From: Scyliorhinus canicula
Taxonomy: Eukaryota
Assembly: GCF_902713615.1 (NCBI RefSeq)
Contig: NC_052147.1
Span: forward strand, 82,238,091 to 82,302,090
Length of the DNA: 64,000 nucleotides
Direction of reading: 5' to 3'
Shown here: positions 6,011 to 54,977 of the stretch, one piece after another
Position numbering within the stretch: position 1 is the stretch's first letter
How the letters are laid out: each line of letters begins with the position of its first letter
The notes under the pieces: generated by a model
What the model was told of the DNA's origin: nothing
Seen by the model: only the letters and a program-made list of their open reading frames with translations
Database searches by the model: none
Translations under genes and position numbers: made by a program

Positions 6011-6354
6011 AGAACATAGAACATAGAACATAGAACAGTACAGCACAGAACAGGCCCTTCGGCCCTCGATGTTGTGCCGAGCCATGATCACCCTACTTAA
6101 ACCCACGTAACCCGTATACCCGTAACCCAACAATCCCCCCATTAACCTTACACTACGGGCAATTTAGCATGGCCAATCCACCTAACCCGCACATCTTTGG
6201 ACTGTGGGAGGAAACCGGAGCACCCGGAGGAAACCCACGCACACACGGGGAGGACGTGCAGACTCCACACAGACAGTGACCCAGCCGGGAATCGAACCTG
6301 GGACCCTGGAGCTGTGAAGCATTGATGCTAACCACCATGCTACCGTGAGGCCCC
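6011..6354 (-). mobile_element. V-SINE with HER1/CR1-derived 3' tail
   Basis: V-domain, plus tail ACATCGAGGGCCGAAGGGCC...(TTCTATG)n shared with the CR1 3' ends in this window. Confidence 0.9.
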
Positions 6355-7029: not shown

Positions 7030-10000
7030 ATTCTTAAATGTTTCAAGTTATTCAAAATTATGATTCTGACAATTCCAATCAATTGCTTGCTAAACTAAAT
7101 AACTTCTATTAAAGGGTATAAAACTCATTCTCTTTATTTAACTTAAAACTTAATTTTTTATAATAATTTCTTGAACTAAAGATATTAAGTTACAGCATGA
7201 ACTGCTTCCTTATCTCAAGACCTGTGTGATAATGGCTGTCTGCTTTCTAAACAACCTTTGTCTGCAGTTAACCCTTCGAGCGCCTTCTGCTATTTCATTT
7301 TAGCATTTCATTACATTTACTTTAATGGGATCTTTTCTGTTACTTTGCTTTTTCTCATGTTCCTTGGGTTTTAACATCAGACCTTCATGTTTCAAATTAC
7401 ATCTTTGCATTTTCATTAACAACATAGATCCCTGAAAGTTGCCACCCAGGTTGATAGGGTTGTTAAGAAGGCGTACGATGTGTTAGCTTTTATTGGTAGG
7501 GGGATTGAGTTTCGGAGCCATGAGGTCATGTTGCAGCTGTACAAAACTCTGGTGCGGCTGCATTTGGAGTATTGCGTGCAGTTCTGGTCGCCGCATTATA
7601 GGAAGGATGTGGAAGCATTGGAAAGGGTGCAGAGGAGATTTACCAGGATGTTGCCTGGTATGGAGGGAAGATCTTATGAGGAAAGGATGAGGGACTTGAG
7701 GCTGTTTTCGTTAGAGAGAAGGTTAAGAGGTGACTTAATTGAGCCATACAAGATGATCAGAGGATTAGTTCGGGTGGACAATGAGAGCCTTTTTCCTCGG
7801 ATGGTGATGGCTAGCACGAGGGGACATAGCTTTAAATTGAGGGGAGATAGATATAGGACAGATGTCAGAGGTAGGTTCTTTACTCAGAGGTAAGCGCGTG
7901 GAATATCCTGCCTGCAACAGTAGTGGACTCACCTTTATTAAGGGCATTTAAATGGTCATTGGATAAACATATGGATGATAAGAGAATAGTGTAGATGGGC
8001 TTTAGAGTGGTTTCACAGGTCGGTGCAACATCGAGGGCCGAAGGGCCTGTACTGCGCTGTCATGTTCTATGTTCTGAGACATTCTTTCTCTCCCAATTCC
8101 CAGGCTGTATGGACTTTATCTGGTTCTTTGGGAAGTCTGCCTTTTTGGAGCACCCCTGCCCTGCCCAGCTTTTCTTCTGGCAGAGCTTCTTTTTTATAAA
8201 TCATTTTGTTGGCATTTCCTATATTTCTAAGCAGTTTTTTAATATATATATATATACATCACATTTAATTTCCTTAATTATACAGAGGTTTAGATTGTCC
8301 TTTGTTTAACTGACCCTATGTGCATTTTGTTGCCCTCTGGATTGATCTACGGTTTCTCCCCCTTCCCCGTTGGCCCACCCCCCACCACCACCACACACAC
8401 AGCCTCGTATGTGCTTTTCTTTTATTTTACAGACAGGGTGGAGAGAGAAGAAAAAAGGGAGAGGGTGGTTTCCCCACCTTCTCCCCCCCTTTCCCGGGTT
8501 GCGCAGTCTTTTGGTACCTCATCTATCTTGCTTTTTAAAAAATTCTCATTAGGTTACTCCTTGCTGCTGGCCTCGAACAGGTTTTGGAACAGACCGACGA
8601 ACTGCCCCCAAGTATCCAGGAAGCCTTCCTCTGACCCTCGGGTGGCGTACTTAATCTTTTCCAGGTGGAGATATTCCGAGAGGTCAGGGAGCCAGTCTGC
8701 AGCTGAGGGTGGTGCTGCCGATCGCCAGCCGAGCAGGATTCTCTGGCGTGCGATTAGAGAAGCGAAAGCAAGGGCGTTGGCCCCCTTCCCCATGTGTAAC
8801 TCTGGCTGCTCCAATACCCCGAAGGTTGCCACTATTGGGCATGGCTTCACCCTCACCCCCACAACCTTGGACATTGCCTCGGAGAAGGCTGCCCAGAACC
8901 CAGCAAGCTTGGGGCAAGCCCAAAACATGTGGGTGAACCGCTCACATTTGTCCTCCACCTTTGGGAAGAACCTGCTCATTGGGGTTCTGGTCAGATGCGC
9001 TCTGTGCACCACTTTGAGCTGCGTTAGGCTTAGCCTTGTGCAGGAGGAGGTGGAGTTCACCCTGCTCAGTGTTTCGCTCCAGAGTCCCCATCCCACCTCT
9101 GTCCCCAGTTCGTCCTCCTAATTTTGTCTGCTCTCGTCCAGTGGAGTCCGGGCTATGTCCAGTAGCTGTCTGTACATTTTCCCACATAGCCCCCCCTTCG
9201 TTGCTTGTGCCTATCGGGTCCTCTAGTAGTGTGGTTTCTGGGGTCCCAGGTACCCTACTGTCTCTTTGCGGAGGAAGTGTTTTATTTGGAGGTGTAGCAT
9301 TTCTTGTCCTTTCGCTAGCCTCCACTTCCTCGTCAGTTCATCTAGTGTCGCCAGTCTGTGTCCTACGTAGAAGTCCCCGACCGTCAATGTGCCCCCGTCC
9401 CGCCTCCATCTTTTGAAGGTGGTATCCAGCATGGCTGGGGGTTTATCTGTGATTGCCGCATATGGGAGCCATGGGGGACATTTTGGCTATCCCGAAGTGT
9501 TGTCTCAGCTGGGTCCACGTTCTCAGCGTGGCCGCTACCACTGGGCTCGTTGTGTATCTTGTTGAGGAGTATGGGAGTGCTGCTGTGGCCAGGGCCCAGA
9601 GGGTCATTTCTTCACAGGATGCCTCCTCCATTTGTACCCAACCTGTGTCGGGTTCTTGTACCCATCCCCTCACTGAAGATCGGAATGGATCTAAAGAGGA
9701 AGAGGAACCTTTCAGTGCGTTCATCTTGATCGTCTGCACTCTCCCTGCCAGGGAGAGTGGGAGTGAGCCCCACCTTTGAAGGTCTCTTCTTACTTCCTCC
9801 ACCAGGCTGGTCAGGTTCCACTTGTGGATCTGTGTCCAATCTCTCGCTATCTGGATCCCCAGGTAATGGAATCTGTTCTGGGCTGTTTTGAACGGGAGCC
9901 CCTCCAGCTCTCTCCCTCCCCCGTTTGGGTTCACTGGGAAAGCCTCACTTTTGCCCAGGTTAAGTTTGTAGCCTGAGAAGGTTCCAAACTCTTTCAATAT

Positions 10001-10562
10001 TTGCAGTATTGCCTTCAGTCCCTCCTGTGGCTTCGAGACATAGACGAGCAGGTTATCTGCATAGAGTGAGACTCTGTGCTCTCTGTCTCCTCTCCGGAAT
10101 CCCTTCCAGCTTTTCGCGTCCCGCAGGGCTCTCGCCAGGGGTTCGATCGCAGGCGCGAACAAGAGTGGGGACAGGGGGCAGCCCTGTCTTGTTCCTCTCT
10201 GCAGCTGGAAGTATTTAGAGCTGGTGGTGTTAGTTCGGACACTCGTTTTGGGAGCGTTGTACAGGAGCCTCACCCAGGCGGTGAACCCCGCTCCTACCCC
10301 AAACCGTTCCAGTACCTCTGAGGTATTTCCATTCGACTCTGTCAAATGCCTTTTCTGCGCCTAGGGAGATGATCACCTCTGGTGTTCTCTCCCCAGAGGG
10401 GGTCATTCGTACGTTTAGCAACCGCCTGATGTTCGCTGTGAGCTGCCTACCCTTCACAAAGCCTGTTTGGTCCTCTGCGACCACCTCTGGTACACAGCGC
10501 TCCAGCCTTTTGGCCAGGACCTTTGCGAGTATTTTCGCATCCACGTTCAGCAGTGAAATCGC

Positions 10563-10893
10563 AGAATTTACAGTGCAGAAGGAGGCCACTTGGCCCATCG
10601 AGTCTGCACCGGCTCTTGGAAAGAGCACCCCACCCAAGGTCAACACTTCCACCCCATCCCCACAAACCAGCAACCCCACCCAACACCAAGGGCAACCTTG
10701 GACATAAGGGCAATTTATCATGGCCAATCCACCTAACCTGCACATCTTTGGACTGTGGGAGGAAACCGGAACACCCGGAGGAAACCCACGCACACACGGG
10801 GAGGATGTGCAGACTCTGCACAGACAGTGACCCAAGCCGGAATCGACCCTGGAGCTGTGAAGCAATTGTGCTATCCACAATGCTACCATGCTG
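10563..10893 (-). mobile_element. HE1-like V-SINE nested in L1 ORF2
   Basis: V-domain core and tRNA head interrupt the RT just before ISLLNVDAKIL. Confidence 0.88.
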
Positions 10894-12920
10894 CCTATGG
10901 GTCTGTGTGATCCACATTCCATCAGGTATTTATCTTGGGTATCCGTGAAATTGTGGCCTGCGTTAATGTGGGGGGCAGGGTGCCCCTTGTCAGTGAGTCC
11001 GCGAACATATCCCTTAAGTGTGGGGACAGGACTGGTGCGGATTTTTAGTAGAAGTCCACCGGGAACCCGTCGTGTCCCGGTGCCTTCCCGGCTGCATGGA
11101 GCTGATGCACTCCATGATTTCTCCCAGGTCTATTGGTGCTTCCAGCTCTCTCTCTCTCTTCGTACAGTCCCCAGTAGAAGGTCTCAAATGCTCGATTGAC
11201 CTCCTTTGGCTCTGTTACCGGTCTGCCTCTGCTATATTTTACCTGCGCTATTTCCCTTGTGGCTGCCTGCTTTCTCAGCTGGTGAGCCAATAGGCGGCCA
11301 GCCTTGTCTCCGTGTTCGTAGAAGGTCCCCCGTGTGTGGTGGAGTTGGTACACTGCTTTCCTAGTGGATAGCAGATTAAAGTCCATTTACAGCTTTTTTC
11401 TCTCCACCAGCAGCTCTACAGTCGGGTCCTCGGAGTATTTTCTGTCGACTTCCAGGATGGAGTCCACCAGTTGTTGCCTGGCCACCCTCTCTTCCCCATC
11501 TCTGCTTGCCTTGTAGGCTATGATCTGTCCTCTAATCATGGCCTTCAGTGCCTCCCAGAACATGGAGGGTGAAATCTCCCCGTTTTGGTTGTTACTAACG
11601 TAGTCACCTATGGCCAGCAATGTTTTTTGACAGAAGGCCTTGTCAGCCAAGAGATCCGTGTCCAGCCTCCAGTGGGGCGCTGGCACCGGCCTGTCTCCAA
11701 CCTCACATCCATATACGGTGGAGCGTGGTCAGAGATAATGATTGCAGAGTACTCTGTTCCTGTGATCCCTGGCAGCACCGATTTCCCCACTGCAAAGAAG
11801 TCAATACGGGTGTACTTTTGAGAACTCCATGAGTCCACCGCCCCCATCTGCTCCATAAATGCTCCTAGTTCCCTGGCCATGCCAGTCTTTTTCCCTGCTT
11901 TGGGGTTTGATCGGTCGGTCAGTGGATCCTGTACACAGTTGAAGTCACCCCCCATGATCAGTCAGTGTGTATCAAGGTCGGGGATTTCTGCCATGGTCTT
12001 CTTTATGAATCCTGTGTTGTCCCAGTTGGGAGCATACAAATTTACCAGTATGACCGGTGCCCCTTCCCGGACACTGCTGACCATGACGTACCGTCCCCCT
12101 GGGTTTGTAACTGTCTTGGTTTCCGTAAACCTCGCCCTCTTGCTAATTAATACTGCCACGCCCCCTAGCCCTTGTCCCGTAGCATGAGTTGTATGTCTGT
12201 CCCACACAGCCCTTTCTTACCAGCAGTCGGTCCTTCTCCCTCAGGTGCGTCTCTTGTAAGTAGATAATGTCTGCTTTTAGGCTGCTTAGGTGTTTGAAGA
12301 CTTTGGATCATTTAACCGGGCCGTTGAATCCCCTTACGTTCCAGGTGACAATCCTGGTGGGGGGTTTCTGACTCCCCGGGCCTGCGGGATCACCCATACT
12401 TACCTGGTGGACGCGCCCCTGCATTCCGGGGTTTCCCTTCGTTAGGGGGCCGTCCAAAATGGCCGCGGTCGCTGCTCTCGCCATGAGGTCGGGCTCCGGG
12501 GTTTCCTTTTGTCCAGGGGGCACCCAACATGGCCGCCAGCTGTGTGTATGCCACATGGCTGCGCCCCTGCACTCCAGGGTCTCCCTTCGCCCTGAAGCCC
12601 TCCCGAGTGGTTGTTTGTGGCGCCATCTTGGTTCCTCACCCTGCTCCATGCCTGCCGAGGTCTGTGTTCGTGCTGTTTATCTACCTCACCCTTCTCTTTG
12701 CTTCTCTTCTGTTCTGCGCTCTTACCCCCCCCCCCCCAACTCCTCTCACTCCCTCCCATAGTCTCTGTTCGCCCTCTGTGTTCTTCTCCCCCCACCCCAC
12801 CCCCTCTGCCCTGTCCCCCCTCCCCCTCTTTGTGCCAAGCGCTCCCTCTCCCTTGAGAGGCGTACCACGGCCCTCCTTTCTTCCTGCCCTCCCGCGTTGG
12901 CCGTCCGCACTAGCACGGTG

Positions 12921-15900
12921 ATAGATAGATTAGATTAGATAGTAATCACACTCCGGAGAGTGCCTTGTCCGAGTCGTCGACGGTTTGTACTACCACCTTA
13001 GCATATTACCACAGCCGGAACTGTGTGGTGGACTGGGGAGGAGGGGATCTTGTTCAGTACTAAACGACCTTTCATTCCGCAGGTTTCCAAGCGTGGTGTC
13101 ACCACCCACCAATTACGAGCTGTAGACCGGTTAGTTATAAACGATACGTCCGGAGACGGCCAACCCTTTATGTGCAGACATATTTGTCATAATTTGATCA
13201 CAAAAGGCTTACTGTGACGGAACTAACAGTTATCTCTAACTACCGGCTACATATGTACAATGGGAGCAACCGGCCATCTCGCACTCCCGGGATAAGGCCA
13301 TTTGTCTGCCTTTACCCGACCCTTCGGGGGTGAGCTTGTCTTCACCAGCTAGAGTCTGGGAATGTCTATTGGTATCCCTTACCTGTCGCTGAAGATTTGC
13401 AGTAATTCCAGCGTCAGGGAGATTGTAAGTCGGGATACCTGCTGGGCGAAACTCTTATACCGTTCTATTCCGAGGAACTAACAGGGTGTTATTCAACTCT
13501 AGCCATTTGCCTCTCGCGCCCAGCACAAAGCCAAAGTGTTCCAGCTGAGAGCCTCCTGTTAGCTCCATGATCTCCGATCCCAAGTAGTTATATTTGAGCC
13601 TTTTCTCATTCCATGCTTTCTCAAGTGATGTTGTCCTCGTAACGGACTGTGACATCCACCAATGCTATTTTCTGGTCCTTCCTGAATATAATATCAGGTT
13701 TCCAGAGGGTTCCGTTTTTAGCCACTAGCCTTGGTTCTACGTAGGATGTCCATCCGTACTTGGATACATACATGCGTACTTGGTCTAGGATCTTGTTGTG
13801 ACGCTTGATCTAGCCATCTTTACAAACGGGCAGCCACCCGAAATGTGTGCCAGCGTCTCATTTGGTGCGTCGCACCTTCTGCACGCTTTGACAGAGTTTG
13901 GACGTCCCCTTGATAGGGTAGTCCGTGTAGGGTATAAGTTGGTGCGGAGCAACAGGTTATTGATCAGTCTATGCGACTTCAATTGATGGAAGGATCTTAT
14001 CCATGTACTGGATATTTTATCGTTATGATAATATGTAATGCCAGCGCCCTGGCTGATCAGGTTTCTTCACTTTTGGAACTCCCATTCCCTCCACGCAGCG
14101 TACCGGTTCACCGGCTTCTCTCGGGGCCGGTCTTGGTCTCTCAACATGGGCAATGCCGCCTCGACAAGATTTCCGGGGTCCTCCTCGTCCGGGTTACAAT
14201 CTGACGCGTTAGAAAGGAAGTCCTCGACTTCCTTTAGGACCTTGAGCCTGCGCAGTCCCCTGATGGTGTCAGTATTGCTTTCCTCCCGGTACTGGAAGGA
14301 CGCCCTTATGACCCTGTCCGTGGATTTCTCGAGTGCTTCGCGTTTGCGAACAATCGCGGATGGAATCTGCACTTCGAGTTTGGGCATTCCCAGACCACCA
14401 TTCCTGTAGCTCGAGTATAGGAGTCCGTCAGTCACGTGCGGTGGGAGGTGTAGGATTTCCTTAGTGGTGTTCCGTATGAGTTGATCCAGTTTTCGGAGCG
14501 TATTCTGCGATACTTCGGACAGGATCAAGTGAAAATACATCCTGGGGATGACATGGGTCTTCAGGACCTCGAGTTTCTGTGCTGGCCGGAGGGCCGCCGC
14601 CTGTAAAGCACAAGTCCAGGCTTTGAGCTTCTCCGACCACTCCCCTTCTGTCACGCCAGCCCATGGGTCTATTCGGGCTCCCAGGTATTTCTCTGTGTCA
14701 TCTGGAGGGATGTAGGCGATTACCTCGTCCCCGAGCTTCCAGTTTTCGTAGTGGTTGTAAATGAAGGTTTTCGACTTGTGGGTGAAGTGAAAACCTTTGG
14801 TCTTGTTGATATTTATCGCCAAGCCCGTATTTATGCAAAAAGACCGGAGTAGCTTCAGGTTCTTAACCATCCCTGCATGAGAGTCACTCAGAAGGGCAAT
14901 GTCATCCACGAAGGCCAAAGCAGAGCAGTTGACTCGGTTCTCTCCAAGGGGCATGACGACCCCTGAGTTGGCCTCCTCCAGGGAGCATATCAATGGATCC
15001 AGAGCTATATTGAATAGAATTGGCGAGAGTGGGTCTCCTTGTTTGACACCCCTCCCAATGTTTATTGGAGCGGTCTTAGTTTTGTTCCCTTCGACCATTG
15101 TGGTATTTTCCGTGTACAGGTCCTTGACCAATGTAATGAAATTCGCTGGTAATTTCATCCTTTGTAGTGTTTTGACAATTAGTTTGTGCCCAACCGAGTC
15201 GGAACGCTTTTGCTAGATCGACAAAGACAACTGCGAGGTCCTTTCTTTTCTTTTTTGCTCCCTTGATGATATTTTCAAGGATTGCAATGTTCTCATTGCA
15301 TCCGGGAGTAGCTGCTAGGAAACCCTTCTGCCTAGGGTTAATCCAAACTGTCTCGCTGAGACGTTTCGCTATGATCTTTGTAAAGAGGTGAAGCAGCATA
15401 GGACCGATGGTAATCAGGCGGCAGTTGTCAATGTCTTTCAATCGTTCTTGATCCTCGCACTTAGGAATCAAGACCGTTCGACTCTTTTTGAGTGAATCAG
15501 GGATCGTTGCTGATTTTAACCAAAGGGAGAAGAGCCGAGGTAGCCGTGTCTCATCCTCGTCATGAATGTCCTGGATGTCTATCAATTTCATGCCATCCGG
15601 ACCGGGCGTGCTTTTCTCATCCACGCCCTTGATTGCTTTAGTTACTTCTTCTACCTCAATTGGTTTCATTAGCTCCCCCTTATCAGTATTACCTTTGTAA
15701 GTGGCGAACTTGCTTACGTTTGCCTTGTTATTGGGTTTCGAGAGTTTGTTTCGAAAGCTCCTCAATGGGTAGAGGACATGTGGATGTGGAAGGGATTAGT
15801 GTGGGAAACATGATTAGTCTTGCCAGTTGGCGTCTATTATTCTTATAGAGTATCTGAGTGTCTCTAAAGATTGCCTTCCGGGTGGCCCATCTTTTGCGTG

Positions 15901-17200
15901 CTCTGCTATTAACGTTGCACGTCTCTTTCCGTTTCCTTCCTTCCTGACCTCTGCGAGGCCCTTGAGCTCTTTGGGGTTTCTTCCCCTTTTTCAGCAGTAC
16001 ATTGGTGATACTCTCCACTATCCCAATGCCTTCAGCCCGGCTGTCGGGGTTATTCCTCACGCACAGTAATCGTTCAGCTTTAGTAAGCTGTTCATCCACC
16101 TCCCTGTGTCTAGGGGTGGCTGTCGGTGGTCTTATCACTATCTGTGGACGTGGGCTTGACGTATCGGGTCTGCTCGTCTCCCCTTCAGACTCTGGTTCTG
16201 GGACCTCTTCCTCAAGATGGTCCTCAGGTGCTGCTGGGGCTACCGCTAGGGTCCTTGGCAGAATTCTGCGTTTGTCTGAGATTTGTTTCGCAGACTTAGT
16301 TGTCAAGACAGTGGCAATCTTTTTATTGATAAACCGCTCCCCCACAAACTGTACCTCAAGTTGTCTCAAGAGGGCAACCTCCTCAACGGACCACTTTTGG
16401 TCTCGCCTCCCCGGCTTGGTAATGACTTTGATGGACTCGAGCCGTTTCTCGTTTCGCAGAGCCGGATGCTCGTGCCTTTCATGTTGCCCGAGTCCAATTT
16501 TGGTCGAGAACCGTTTCTCGCAAATGCTGCAACCAAAGGCACCGGCCGGAGCCGTTTGCCTTATTCCGTTGCATTTTGCAAAGTGGCAGGCGATAGCGTG
16601 GTACTCGCCTGTTTTGCCGCATTTCGAGCATTTGGTTCTGATGGATTTGACCTGATGGTTTTTTGTCATATGACTATTAAATAGTCCCATGCTGGGGAGG
16701 ACGGAATCGCAGATCCTGCAGTAGAACCCATCGGTGGGATAGTGGATCGTTACCTCTTTAACTGCTGTTCGGTCATAAATGAGTTCGATAACGACCTCTT
16801 CCACGAAGGCGACCGTATCGGCTGGTTCATCGCACAGATTTTGTGCACCCAAATTATTTCCCGTTTCCGTTCCCTGTTTCCCGTTCTTGTATTTCTTGCT
16901 ATAGAAGGTTTGTGTTACTAATACTCCTGTCGGGTGGGTCGCCCGCTCAGGTTCTTCTATAGCAGTGTTAGTGTCATCAACTATTGGGGATACTGGTCTT
17001 TCTAGTCTGGCACCCGGACTCAGCTCCCAATAGGGAAGGAGGTATTGTCTAAAAGGTCTCGCGTCTGCGGTGGACGCTGTTACTAGCCCGGCGGGGCGGC
17101 TAGAACATGGGCAGCATCGGCATTTATCACAGAGCGCTGCTGCTGACACATCTGCGGGGCGGTTTGTCCGGGACGCAGCCCAACCGGTCTCATCTATCAA
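12921..17200 (-). mobile_element. R2 non-LTR retrotransposon (A-lineage architecture), outside rDNA
   Basis: CCHH (CRICD...HMTKNH), CCHC (CSKC...HFAKC) and CCHH (CSICEKRFSTKIGLGQHERHEH) fingers. Myb (WSVEE...KSAKQISDKRR). RT (PGPDG, RQKGF, DLAKAF, GVKQGDPLSP, AFVDD, KYLG). CCHC (CRRC...HISGGC). RLE (RHN..EP..KPDII..DVTV..EKRLKY). The 5' boundary (~17200) is approximate. Confidence 0.9.
13379..17200 (-). pseudogene. R2 single ORF, disrupted by several frameshifts and a stop
   Basis: Pieces 15728-17311, 15076-15765, 14067-15158, 13785-13982 and 13455-13655 are colinear parts of one R2 protein ending ...LLQIFSDR* (TAA at 13381-13379). Confidence 0.85.
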
Positions 17201-20200
17201 TCTCCCAGTACTTGCCCTGCTCTGGTCCTGTTTTACCTTCCTTTTGCTAGCCCTTGTCTCGTCCTCCTGCCCGCCTTTCTCGCCCTCGTTCACCTTGCTC
17301 CGCTCCCCCATTGCATTGAGAGAAGGAACGAGCCCGGGAACGAGTCAGCACAGTCCCTCGCAGTACACCAAACACGTGTACAGTTCCTGATCTTATTGTC
17401 TCTGTTTGCAGTCTGCCCTCCGCTCTTTGTTCTGATTCTTCCTTTCTTTTCCATCCCTGTCGTTTTCATGATGGCCGTTGCGGCTGTCCCTCCTCCAGTT
17501 TGTTCGCTGTAACAAACTCCTCTGCTGCTGCTGGGGTATTTAAAAAACAGCTCCTTCCCCTCGAATGTTACCCAGAGTTTGGCCGGGAATAACATCCCAA
17601 ATTTGACATTACTTTTGTAGAGTGCTGAATTGGCCTTGTTGAATTCAGCCCTTTTGGCCAAGTCCGCCCCAATGTCGTGGTACACCCTTATGATCTTCCC
17701 TTCCCAATGCTTGATTTCGTCTGCCGGGCCCACATAAGGATTTTCTTCCCTGTCTTGGAACCTGTGCAGCTTCATGATAATCGCTCTGGGCTGCTCCCCG
17801 GCTTTGGGCCTGGGTCAAAGCGACCTGTGCGCCCTGTCGATTTCTGGGAGGTTTGGAAATTTCTCCCTTCCCACTAGCTTGCCCAGCATTTGAGTGACTT
17901 AGCCTCTGCCCTCCATCCACTCTGGCAGACTCACTATTTTAACATTCTGCTGCCTGGACCTATTTTCCTGGTCCTCCACTTTCCCTTTTAAGCTCCCCTG
18001 AGTGGTTACCAGCCTTTGCACCTCGGTTTCCTGAGTTACCATCCTATCGCTCTGGTCTGAGGCGGCCCTCTCCAACTCCAGAATCGTGTTCTCCTGCGCC
18101 TCCACCTTCCTTTCTAGGCCATCGATGGTTCGCTGCATTTTGTCCGTTGTCTCCGCCAGCATCTCCTTCATCATTGTGTGGAGCTCCGTCCTGAGCGCCT
18201 CCCTCATGGTGTTTATCTTCGTTTTTATCTCCTCCTTTATGGCGTTTATCTCCGTTTTCAGCGCGCTTCTCCATTCCTCCCCCTGTGCGAGGGGGGGGGG
18301 GGGTGGCGGCCGCCGCCGCGACCCGTTCCTGCTCCATTGCTCGGCTCGCCAGCTTTTCCGCTTCCCGGTTCGCCTGAACCTCCACCTCGCCCCGTGGGGT
18401 CGTCTGCCTACGCGGCCGCAGCTCCTGCTTTTTTCCTTCGCCTTCGCTGCTGCTCCTTCTTGCATCTCGCCGTCCCCCCGATTTATTATTATTTGCAGGC
18501 ATATGCCTGTTATGTGCCTTTCTCTTTTTTCCCTGAGGTTTGGTGCAAGAAAGAGATTCTTTTTTAAAAAGAACATTTTTATTTTGTTTTTGTCTTATCC
18601 TCTCTGTGCTCCGACTTTCAGGCAGTTTCTTGTTGCGATCCCCACTCCTCCTCCACGTGAAGCTGCCCCGCTGACCGGGACCAGTCTCTCCTCTTCTTTT
18701 TCTCTTCAGCTCTGTGGAACAGAGCTTTGGCGCCTAGGCAGGGCGAGGGAGGCGGGGCCAATTTCGCAGGGCTCTAATTCTTTTTAAGAACCCGCCGGAA
18801 AAACCCCCGAAAAATAGCCGTGATTTTGTGGATCTGCGGCCGCTCCGTTTGCGAATGCCATCGGAAGTTTGGCTTCTTCTGGCAGAGCTGTGAGATATTC
18901 ACTGTCCGGCTCACCTGTATGTCCAACAGACGCACACCCCAGTCTCACGCACGCACACCCCTCACTCACACATGCTCACCCCCCTCATGCACACGCACGC
19001 ACACATACGCGAACCATTGCAAATTCCGATGAAAGTTCACCAAGAAGAAATGTAACTCTGTTTCTCCCTAAGAAGCTGCTAGTGGCCCTAATGAATATTT
19101 TTAACATTTTCTATTTGCTTTTCATGGTTCCTTCTTTGCATTCTGTATTGACATTATCGAATCATAGAAAGGTTACAACACAGGAGACCATTTGGCTCAT
19201 CCTATCCATGCCTGTCCTCGGACACCCAGGTGCCCTTTCTAATGCCACCTTCCTGCACCCGGTTCACAGCCTTGTAGCTTAGAGCACTTAAGGTGCAGAT
19301 CCGTGTATTGGACAACCAGCACAGACCTGGTGATTCTCCCGTCGCTTTCCGCATGTTTTTCACGCGGTGCTGGTGCTAGCCCCTCACCGGTAGCGGAATC
19401 GGTGCAGGTGTGGTCCCGATTTTTCTGTCATGGTACTCCACGGATCCTCCGATGGCGTCAGCACCTAGATGCAGGAAGGAGAATCCAGCCTATGTACTCT
19501 AAGGGGGTTTTGATAGTGGTGTTTGAAATCAAGAAAGTTTTAGATAGAATAAATAAAAATAACCTACCCCCAATATCTGAAGGATAGCTAACCAATGGAC
19601 AATGACTTAGTTTAATAAGCGGTAGTTCCAGAATGGATATGAAGAAAATATATCTGTGCATTGAGTTTGGAATGCAATGCCTTAGAGCATGTTGGGTAAG
19701 GATAAAATAAATACCATCAAATGGAATGGGTATACATTTGACATAGGAAATTTTCATGGTTTCTGGTGAAGAGAGGTTTGACTGGATACATTGTGTTGCA
19801 TTTCGAAAGAGCCAATGCAGAAGTGATGGATTGAATAGAACTTACCTGAAAAACACCTATTTAAAAACTCCCATTACACCCCCTTTGCATTCTACTTTCT
19901 TTTGTTTTGCTATTCGTGCCATTTGCCTTTTTTCCATCACGGAGCACAACTTTTGTTCTTTCCTCCTCTCTCCACCATTCCCTGCCTCTCCCCTCTCCCC
20001 TCACATTCAAAACCTGTTGCAGTGCAAATAATCATCAGTTCTGATGGAAGTTAAACAAGTTGGATGTAATCCTGTTACTCCCTCTCCCACAGATGCTGAG
20101 GGTCCCACTGGATATTTCCAACATTTCCTATTTCTATTCCATGTTTCCAAAGTCCACTGTGTATGGTCTTGATCATAATCGTCAGTGTCGGACAATTATC

Positions 20201-50981: not shown

Positions 50982-51317
50982 ATAGAACATAGAACAGCAC
51001 AGAACAGGCCCTTCAGCCCTCGATGTTGTGCCGAGCAATGATCACCCTACTTAAACCCACATACCCGTAACCCAACAATCCCCCCATTAACCTTACACTA
51101 CGGGCAATTTAGCATGGCCAATCCACCTAACCCACACATCTTTGGACTGTGGGAGGAAACCGGAGCACCCGGAGGAAACCCACGCACACACGGGGAGGAC
51201 GTGCAGACTCCACACAGACAGTGACCCAGCTCGGGAATCGAACCTGGGACCCTGGAGCTGTGAAGCATTGATGCTAACCACCATGCTACCGTGAGGCCCC
51301 TGCTACCGTGAGGCCCC
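50982..51317 (-). mobile_element. V-SINE with CR1 tail nested in the Gypsy LTR
   Basis: Nearly identical to 6011-6354, with a 17-bp tandem duplication of its head (51284-51317). Confidence 0.88.
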
Positions 51318-54622: not shown

Positions 54623-54977
54623 TGGGCAGCACGGTAGCATAGTGGTTATCACAAATGCTTCACAGCTCCAGGGTCGCAGGTTCGAATCCCCGCTGGGTCA
54701 CTGTCTATGCAGAGTCTGCACGTTCTCTCTCCCTTGTCTGCGTGGGTTTCCTCCGGGTGCTCCGGTTTCCTCCCAAAGTCCAAAGATGTGCTGGTTAAGT
54801 GGATTGGCCATGCCGAATTGCCCTTAGTGTCCAAATTGCCCTTAGTGTTGGGTGGGGTTACTGGGTTATGGAGATAGGATGGAGGTGTGGGCTTGGGTAG
54901 GGTGCTCTTTCCAAGAGCTGGTGCAGACTCGATGGGCTGAATGGTCTCCTGCACTGTAAATTCTATGAAATCTATGA
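54623..54977 (+). mobile_element. HE1-like V-SINE (long form)
   Basis: tRNA head, V-domain and ttctatgaaatctatgaa tail. Confidence 0.88.

Follow-up and report, generated by a model that had tools for sequence, protein, structure and literature searches.

How does an R2 retrotransposon come to lie in the spacer of an L1 element rather than at the 28S site of ribosomal DNA (rDNA)? We address this question at one locus of the shark Scyliorhinus canicula, within a stretch of 64,000 nucleotides (contig NC_052147.1 of assembly GCF_902713615.1, positions 82,238,091 to 82,302,090; hereafter the window, whose own numbering is used throughout). An R2 relic of 4281 bp occupies positions 12921-17201 on the minus strand. 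We conclude that this element probably arose by an ectopic insertion, long ago, of the 28S-rDNA-specific R2 of lineage A that is resident in the organism.

The predicted domains, all read on the minus strand, identify the element as an R2 of A architecture. Three N-terminal zinc fingers, a CCHH finger (ZF3, 16720-16655), a CCHC finger (ZF2, about 16630-16571) and a second CCHH finger (ZF1, 16531-16466), stand ahead of a Myb domain (16393-16265), which is the CCHH-CCHC-CCHH order of lineage A. Together with the spacer behind Myb they make up an N-terminal region at 15728-17201 that begins at about residue 17 of a homologous protein, P0002. The two motifs singled out in a preliminary description of this DNA, KIGLGQH and K.AKQISDKRR, are indeed present, the former in ZF1 and the latter in Myb, as KSAKQISDKRR. 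The reverse transcriptase (RT) and thumb follow at 14067-15765 (RT 15765-14070; Pfam RVT_1), with VDLAKAF and FVDD, then a linker and CCHC zinc knuckle at 13785-13982 (knuckle 13883-13830; Pfam zf-RVT), and finally a PD-(D/E)XK restriction-like endonuclease (RLE) at 13455-13773, split over two frames with KPD..DVT at 13701-13648 and EKRLKY at 13607-13590. With the fingers and Myb, these complete the R2 architecture. For every piece the top matches in PDB were A-clade vertebrate R2 proteins (9dou, which is R2Tg, 9nl2 and 9nl3). The N-terminus matched an A-clade R2 at E 4.5e-37, against 5.5e-4 for Bombyx R2; the RT matched 9nl2 at E 4e-61, against 3e-35 for Bombyx R2; the knuckle matched 9nl3 at E 3.5e-12; and the two RLE pieces had A-clade R2 as best match at E 1.7e-6 and 5e-9. 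The full R2 domain set that had been reported is therefore borne out by PDB and Pfam as far as the domains go, but the copy is not full length, as it has neither 5' untranslated region (UTR) nor start codon.

The nearest database proteins are gene models of Scyliorhinus torazame (84% identical in the RT), models from the bamboo shark Chiloscyllium punctatum, and the metagenome-derived P0002. We built a maximum-likelihood tree from 65 RT-thumb rows, a quick tree without curated D, NeSL, R4 or Utopia references, and in it the window copy groups with the S. torazame proteins (support 98). Moving outward, it is nested successively with C. punctatum relics and P0002, with P0007, with a 28S-inserted C. 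punctatum R2 (P0009) and with turtle R2. All of these lie within a three-finger vertebrate R2 clade that includes birds and ray-finned fishes, with values of the Shimodaira-Hasegawa-like approximate likelihood-ratio test (SH-aLRT) of 96-100 on the shark-turtle nodes, and the earlier assignment to lineage A holds in this phylogeny. Three R2-like proteins carry misleading names in the databases (P0038, P0088 and P0011): two are listed as proteins of Aeromonas metagenome-assembled genomes, probably through contamination from fish hosts, and one, a turtle R2, is listed as a PDE3B isoform.

The surroundings of the element are those of an L1 and not of 28S rDNA. Rfam, run with both gathering and E-value thresholds, returned no rRNA, no hepatitis delta virus (HDV)-like ribozyme, no R2 3' element and no other family anywhere in the window. 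The 16-nt 28S target, with as many as 3 mismatches allowed, matched the window at a chance-like level only and nowhere at the junctions, and when both flanks and the rebuilt empty site were aligned locally to the 28S target, they scored no better than shuffled sequence. With no rRNA in the window and L1 on either side, this copy does not sit at the canonical site, TTAAGG/TAGCCAAATG (here and below a slash marks the insertion point). The flanks belong to a high-copy long interspersed element (LINE) on the same strand as R2, with contig depths in the hundreds to thousands in one public sequencing run (X2), and the top PDB match of its RT is human L1 ORF2p (E 2e-41). The R2 copy lies in the spacer between ORF1 and ORF2 of this L1. 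Accordingly, Rfam, the target alignment and the L1 RT match all agree with the view, taken in the preliminary description, of an A-lineage R2 outside 28S in L1 spacer DNA.

The insertion itself can be resolved to the nucleotide. Self-comparison of the window found no second copy of R2 or of its L1 flanks, and the borders were therefore taken from contigs of four public runs of the same organism, aligned onto the region (X1, X2, X13 and X14 are named here). In these four runs, contigs of other L1 copies connect position 12920 to position 17202, skipping 4281 bases, and these joints set the borders of the insertion at 12921 and 17201; of the borders given previously, the first stands and the second, 17200, moves by one base. 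Between 12920 and 17202 the empty-site contigs carry GCCCCC(C) or GCCCTC, the empty L1 site reading ...TACTGGGAG GGGGGC CACCGTGC... These roughly 6 extra letters mean that about 6 bp of target were deleted. Judged from the same contigs, there is no target-site duplication (TSD) at the R2 insertion, as had been noted earlier, and in its place we see the 6-bp loss.

Such a locus might be thought to involve no retrotransposition at all, being either an assembly chimera or the result of a DNA-level relocation of an rDNA fragment that carried R2. It is true that rDNA and its insertions are frequently misassembled, as one study of shark and ray R2s also notes (PMC13188248). However, a contig from X1 crosses the 3' junction (12623-13035) and one from X13 crosses the 5' junction (17058-17353), each at least 99% identical to the window. 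The two come from different studies, and the L1-R2 junctions are genuine and not a chimera. Moreover, no 28S nucleotide stands beside the element, and its 6% divergence from the rDNA variant described below shows that it is no misplaced rDNA read. We regard this alternative as most improbable.

The same runs show where the R2 family of this organism resides. In every run, one dominant set of contigs covers the body of the element, at a depth of about 50-95 (mostly about 60) in the DNA run X2, where single paralogous contigs reach a depth of 2.5-3. Over 3.8 kb, this dominant variant and the window copy share 93.8% identity. The variant departs from homology with the window at 12943 and then continues, in R2 sense, as AA/TAGCCAAATGCCTCGTCATCTAATT, a junction present in both X2 (depth 60) and X14. 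The sequence is that of the canonical R2 site in 28S, and it also follows an intact R2 of C. punctatum (locus L003). The abundant copies thus stand at the 28S site as judged by their 3' junction in X2 and X14, and the resident R2 family of the organism is 28S-inserted. Its closest relatives with readable flanks are 28S-inserted as well. The contig that encodes P0002 (L001) shows a 5' junction, opening with 98 nt of 28S that end in ...ATGACTCTCTTAAGG (Rfam large-subunit (LSU) rRNA, 2e-25) and passing directly into the element, and L003 shows the canonical 3' junction, R2/TAGCCAAATGCCTCG.

On the 5' side, the dominant contigs of all four runs extend at least 255-276 nt past 17199. This extension can be aligned with the 5' part of bamboo-shark R2 copies, some 220 nt into the element, and is therefore additional R2 and not 28S. 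The window copy, which starts at residue 17 of P0002 in the protein alignment, is a 5'-truncated derivative of the resident element, without 5' UTR, start codon and about the first 16 codons. R2 ribozymes lie in the 5' UTR. With some 220-280 nt missing and no Rfam match, the window copy has no sign of the HDV-like ribozyme associated with co-transcription with 28S. Contigs of the dominant variant also occur in the RNA-labelled runs, where X14 shows its R2/28S 3' junction, and the contig of the dead locus across its 5' junction is from an RNA-labelled run too (X13). These could reflect co-transcription of R2 with 28S and read-through of the dead locus, or simply DNA in the libraries.

We suggest that an rDNA copy supplied R2 RNA, and that a 3'-OH in the L1 spacer primed the reverse transcription of this RNA. 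The priming end would have been on the plus strand at 12920, ...GCACGGTG-3', and it may have been supplied by a stray nick from R2's own endonuclease or by a pre-existing break. Two features of the 3' junction bear on how synthesis would have begun. First, 2 nt of the R2 3' end are absent relative to the dominant variant. Second, a filler of 22 nt, (ATCTA)n-like, occupies 12921-12942; it is missing from the 28S-resident variant, which has AA and then 28S at this point. Tandem Repeats Finder (TRF) reports it as a repeat of period 5 in 4 copies (12922-12940), the sole such repeat in the window. After the filler, synthesis would thus have started at a point about 2 nt inside the normal 3' end of R2, and would have halted, or been joined, some 220-280 nt before the RNA's 5' end, with the loss of about 6 bp of target on joining. 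We infer target-primed reverse transcription by R2's own protein, with a loose 3' initiation because the 28S tail of the RNA could not anneal to the L1 target. The copy would have been dead on arrival, since it lacked the 5' UTR with its ribozyme, the start codon and an RNA polymerase I (Pol I) context. Subsequent decay is visible in 6.2% mismatches to the current rDNA variant, in four frameshifts and in the in-frame stop.

The filler also brings up a different machinery, in which R2 RNA was copied in trans, or through template switching, by another LINE, for example one with an (ATCTA)n or (AATCT)n tail. The 3' junction has an (ATCTA)n-like repeat where the rDNA variant has none, and its pentamer is identical to the tail of a short interspersed element (SINE) of the bamboo shark (at L004:2459-2473 and L005:6962-6981). 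On the other hand, no LINE or SINE in the 64-kb window has an (ATCTA)n tail, the tails there being (ATAGAAC)n-like or (AATTCTGT)n-like, and no 3' UTR of a partner LINE lies between the tail and R2. L1 itself is an unlikely agent, as a TSD, poly(A) and an L1-type target are all lacking. Processed pseudogenes made by L1 have poly(A), a TSD of 7-20 bp and a TT/AAAA-like site, whereas here there is an (ATCTA)n-like tail, a 6-bp deletion and GTG/GCCCCC. We consider copying by other LINE machinery quite improbable. A double template switch during L1 retrotransposition, with one jump from L1 to R2 and a second to L1 again, was considered separately and rejected, as the second jump would have to land on the L1 RNA no more than 6 nt from the point of departure.

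Insertions of this kind are not confined to S. canicula. We found three R2 relics outside rDNA in C. punctatum, at L004:7136-11626, L005:6981-11102 and L006:6403-10705, whose scaffolds are 4.4 Mb, 2.0 Mb and 0.53 Mb long, respectively. They are mutually 85-89% identical over 4.1-4.4 kb and have unrelated flanks. Neither 28S target motif was found in any of the three loci, LSU rRNA is absent from the 8 kb on either side of L004, and Rfam returned no rRNA, HDV-like ribozyme or R2 3' element from L002-L004. At their 5' ends, L006 matches 28S at 23 of 24 nt (positions -28 to -5) and L004 at 18 of 20 nt (-20 to -1), scores that were reached by 0 of 2000 shuffles in each case. These 28S leaders mark L004 and L006, members of a sister family of the window element, as copies of 28S co-transcripts made in rDNA and inserted elsewhere. 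The 3' ends of the bamboo-shark strays, ...CAAAATA and ...CAAAATAGC, correspond to the end of the element plus perhaps 2-4 nt of 28S. Possible short target duplications were noted, TTGTGTAA in L004 and ATTG(G)TG in L006. An (AATCT)n stretch at the 5' end of L005 was rejected as an R2 junction, as it is a SINE tail beside an assembly gap, most simply from a SINE inserted into the relic. L004 was likewise rejected as an orthologue of the window locus, since the flanks are unrelated. Taken together, stray insertion of R2 seems to be recurrent in sharks.

Does this recurrence mean that a shark R2 lineage has relaxed or lost its specificity and is spreading through non-rDNA sites in the manner of the R2NS families, with the window copy an ordinary member? 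The relics of the same clade at three unrelated C. punctatum loci would fit, and so might three gene models of the clade in S. torazame, which lie on scaffolds of 255-487 kb. Several observations stand against it. The dominant family variant has a canonical 28S 3' junction, and the 28S leaders on two of the bamboo-shark strays indicate that rDNA copies, not a dispersed master, gave rise to them. An R2NS-type family is recognized by many near-identical non-rDNA copies with no 28S population, whereas every stray copy seen here is old, broken and 6-15% diverged, none is young, and the dominant variant is joined to 28S. In addition, in several bins the dominant variant by itself accounts for the contig depth, so that large numbers of similar copies dispersed elsewhere could hardly be accommodated; no common target motif was seen, and the L1 site does not resemble the 28S target. 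We therefore find a relaxed lineage unlikely. Of the two readings offered in the preliminary description, the off-target insertion stands, and the relaxed or changed target gives way to the 28S junction of the dominant variant and the 28S insertion of its relatives. The finding of other copies at canonical 28S sites, which was to decide between the two, was largely obtained (dominant variant, L001 and L003), and the bamboo-shark strays leave a weak form of relaxed specificity.

Certain points weigh against an ectopic insertion of a 28S-specific resident R2. The several further ectopic relics in sharks suggest that this was no isolated accident. The 28S flank of the dominant variant is visible for 27 nt only, and its 5' junction is unseen. 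Given that some fish R2 families have 28S-like sequence within the 3' UTR (PMC5035012), those 27 nt are no absolute proof of residence in rDNA, although they begin exactly at the canonical position and match perfectly. Finally, contig depths cannot be converted to copy counts, and hence they give no genome-wide ratio of rDNA to ectopic copies.

The state of the coding sequence is in keeping with an old insertion of the resident element, and the earlier statement that the copy is inactivated was correct: there are four frame changes and one in-frame stop. The relic is split into six reading-frame pieces, with breaks near 15728-15765, 15201, 13773-13809 and 13628-13655. Within the RT, there is a +1 frameshift at about 15201, and the stop falls at 14067-14069. 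Relative to the dominant variant, frame-changing indels are located at 15201, 13809, 13628 (a deletion of 5 nt) and 13479, and the frame change near 15728-15765 is close to indels at 15755, 15795 and 15804. Downstream of the RLE, the 3' UTR spans 12943-13454; over its terminal part it can be aligned with the 3' ends of bamboo-shark R2, and the dominant X2 contig covers 12943-13353. The longest open reading frame (ORF) of the region (15728-17311, minus strand) opens at an ATG at 17311 in the L1 spacer, continues without a change of frame into the truncated N-terminus of R2, and looks like a chance fusion frame.

Of the host L1, the upstream flank (17202-18576, minus strand, very high contig depth) holds part of the spacer and the end of an ORF1-like coiled-coil ORF (17290-18576), which lies on the same strand as R2 and was assigned by position and coiled-coil content only; this is host DNA and not R2. 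The downstream flank (9443-12920, minus strand) holds the rest of the spacer and ORF2, with its RT at 9443-10922 (RVT_1 and PDB). Searches of Pfam and PDB left the ORF1-like and endonuclease-like pieces of this element unrecognized, and the L1 assignment rests on the RT. A SINE-like repeat occurs in the window in many copies that are 70-92% mutually identical (10563-10895, 2493-2834, 54625-54964, 6144-6347, 51089-51293 and others), one of them within the RT region of the L1 ORF2 beside the R2 host site.

Taken alone, the window copy is a dead retrotransposon of an ordinary kind. What gives it value is that it is a cleanly resolved insertion of an A-lineage R2 that missed 28S, for which the exact borders, the empty site, the 6-bp deletion, the 5' truncation and the 3' filler can all be read. 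On a broader and more tentative view, which may be correct but which we would not favor as yet, the A-lineage R2 of sharks keeps its home in 28S but is leaky, and dispersed strays, either full-length with ribozyme-processed 28S leaders or truncated, have been preserved in a slowly evolving genome. If this is true, strays of a leaky R2 would provide a natural record of the places at which A-clade R2 integrates off target and of the manner in which it does so. A-clade R2 proteins, the type used to insert transgenes, are under development for site-specific gene insertion. A census of natural strays in sharks could show how frequent such events are and what junction structures they leave.

Comparison with known systems shows no indication of a new target specificity for the window copy, which is a further case of a known kind of event. 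With the lineage A vertebrate R2s of zebra finch (R2Tg/TaGu) and turtle (PlaMe), represented by 9dou, 9nl2 and 9nl3 (PMC12180492), it shares the order of domains and the conserved KIGLGQH and AKQISDKRR motifs; unlike them, it lies outside 28S, is broken, and has neither 5' UTR nor start codon. Chondrichthyan R2s are known, among them R2Sqj of an angel shark (PMC5035012) and, in sharks and rays, R2s of both lineages, A and D (PMC13188248). Their host group is the same, and the dominant variant and the C. punctatum R2 at L003 resemble them in standing at canonical 28S. In the available portions of these two reports, R2 is defined by its 28S flanks and strays are undescribed.

Precedents for the insertion itself come from insects. 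Incomplete and diverged R2 copies outside rDNA were described in five Drosophila species and were judged not to be a source of active elements (Stage & Eickbush 2009, PMC2718515). Those are insect D-type elements diverged by 1-2%, whereas the shark copy is of lineage A, about 6% diverged, and has exact borders and an empty site. The same paper describes insertions of R1 outside 28S that carry, at the 5' end, 7-28 bp of upstream 28S and, at the 3' end, either a few nucleotides of 28S or non-templated ones. These resemble L004 and L006, with their leaders of 18-24 nt, and, in respect of the 3' filler, the window copy, although R1 is a different element with an apurinic/apyrimidinic endonuclease (APE). 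The non-specific R2 families include R2-homologues of sponges and the flatworm elements R2NS-1_SMed and R2NS-1_CSi (clades D and C), the latter two with copies at many sites that are more than 98% identical to the consensus (PMC5035012). The flatworm and shark elements alike are R2-clade members at non-rDNA sites; in the shark, however, the abundant variant is inserted in 28S and the strays are old.

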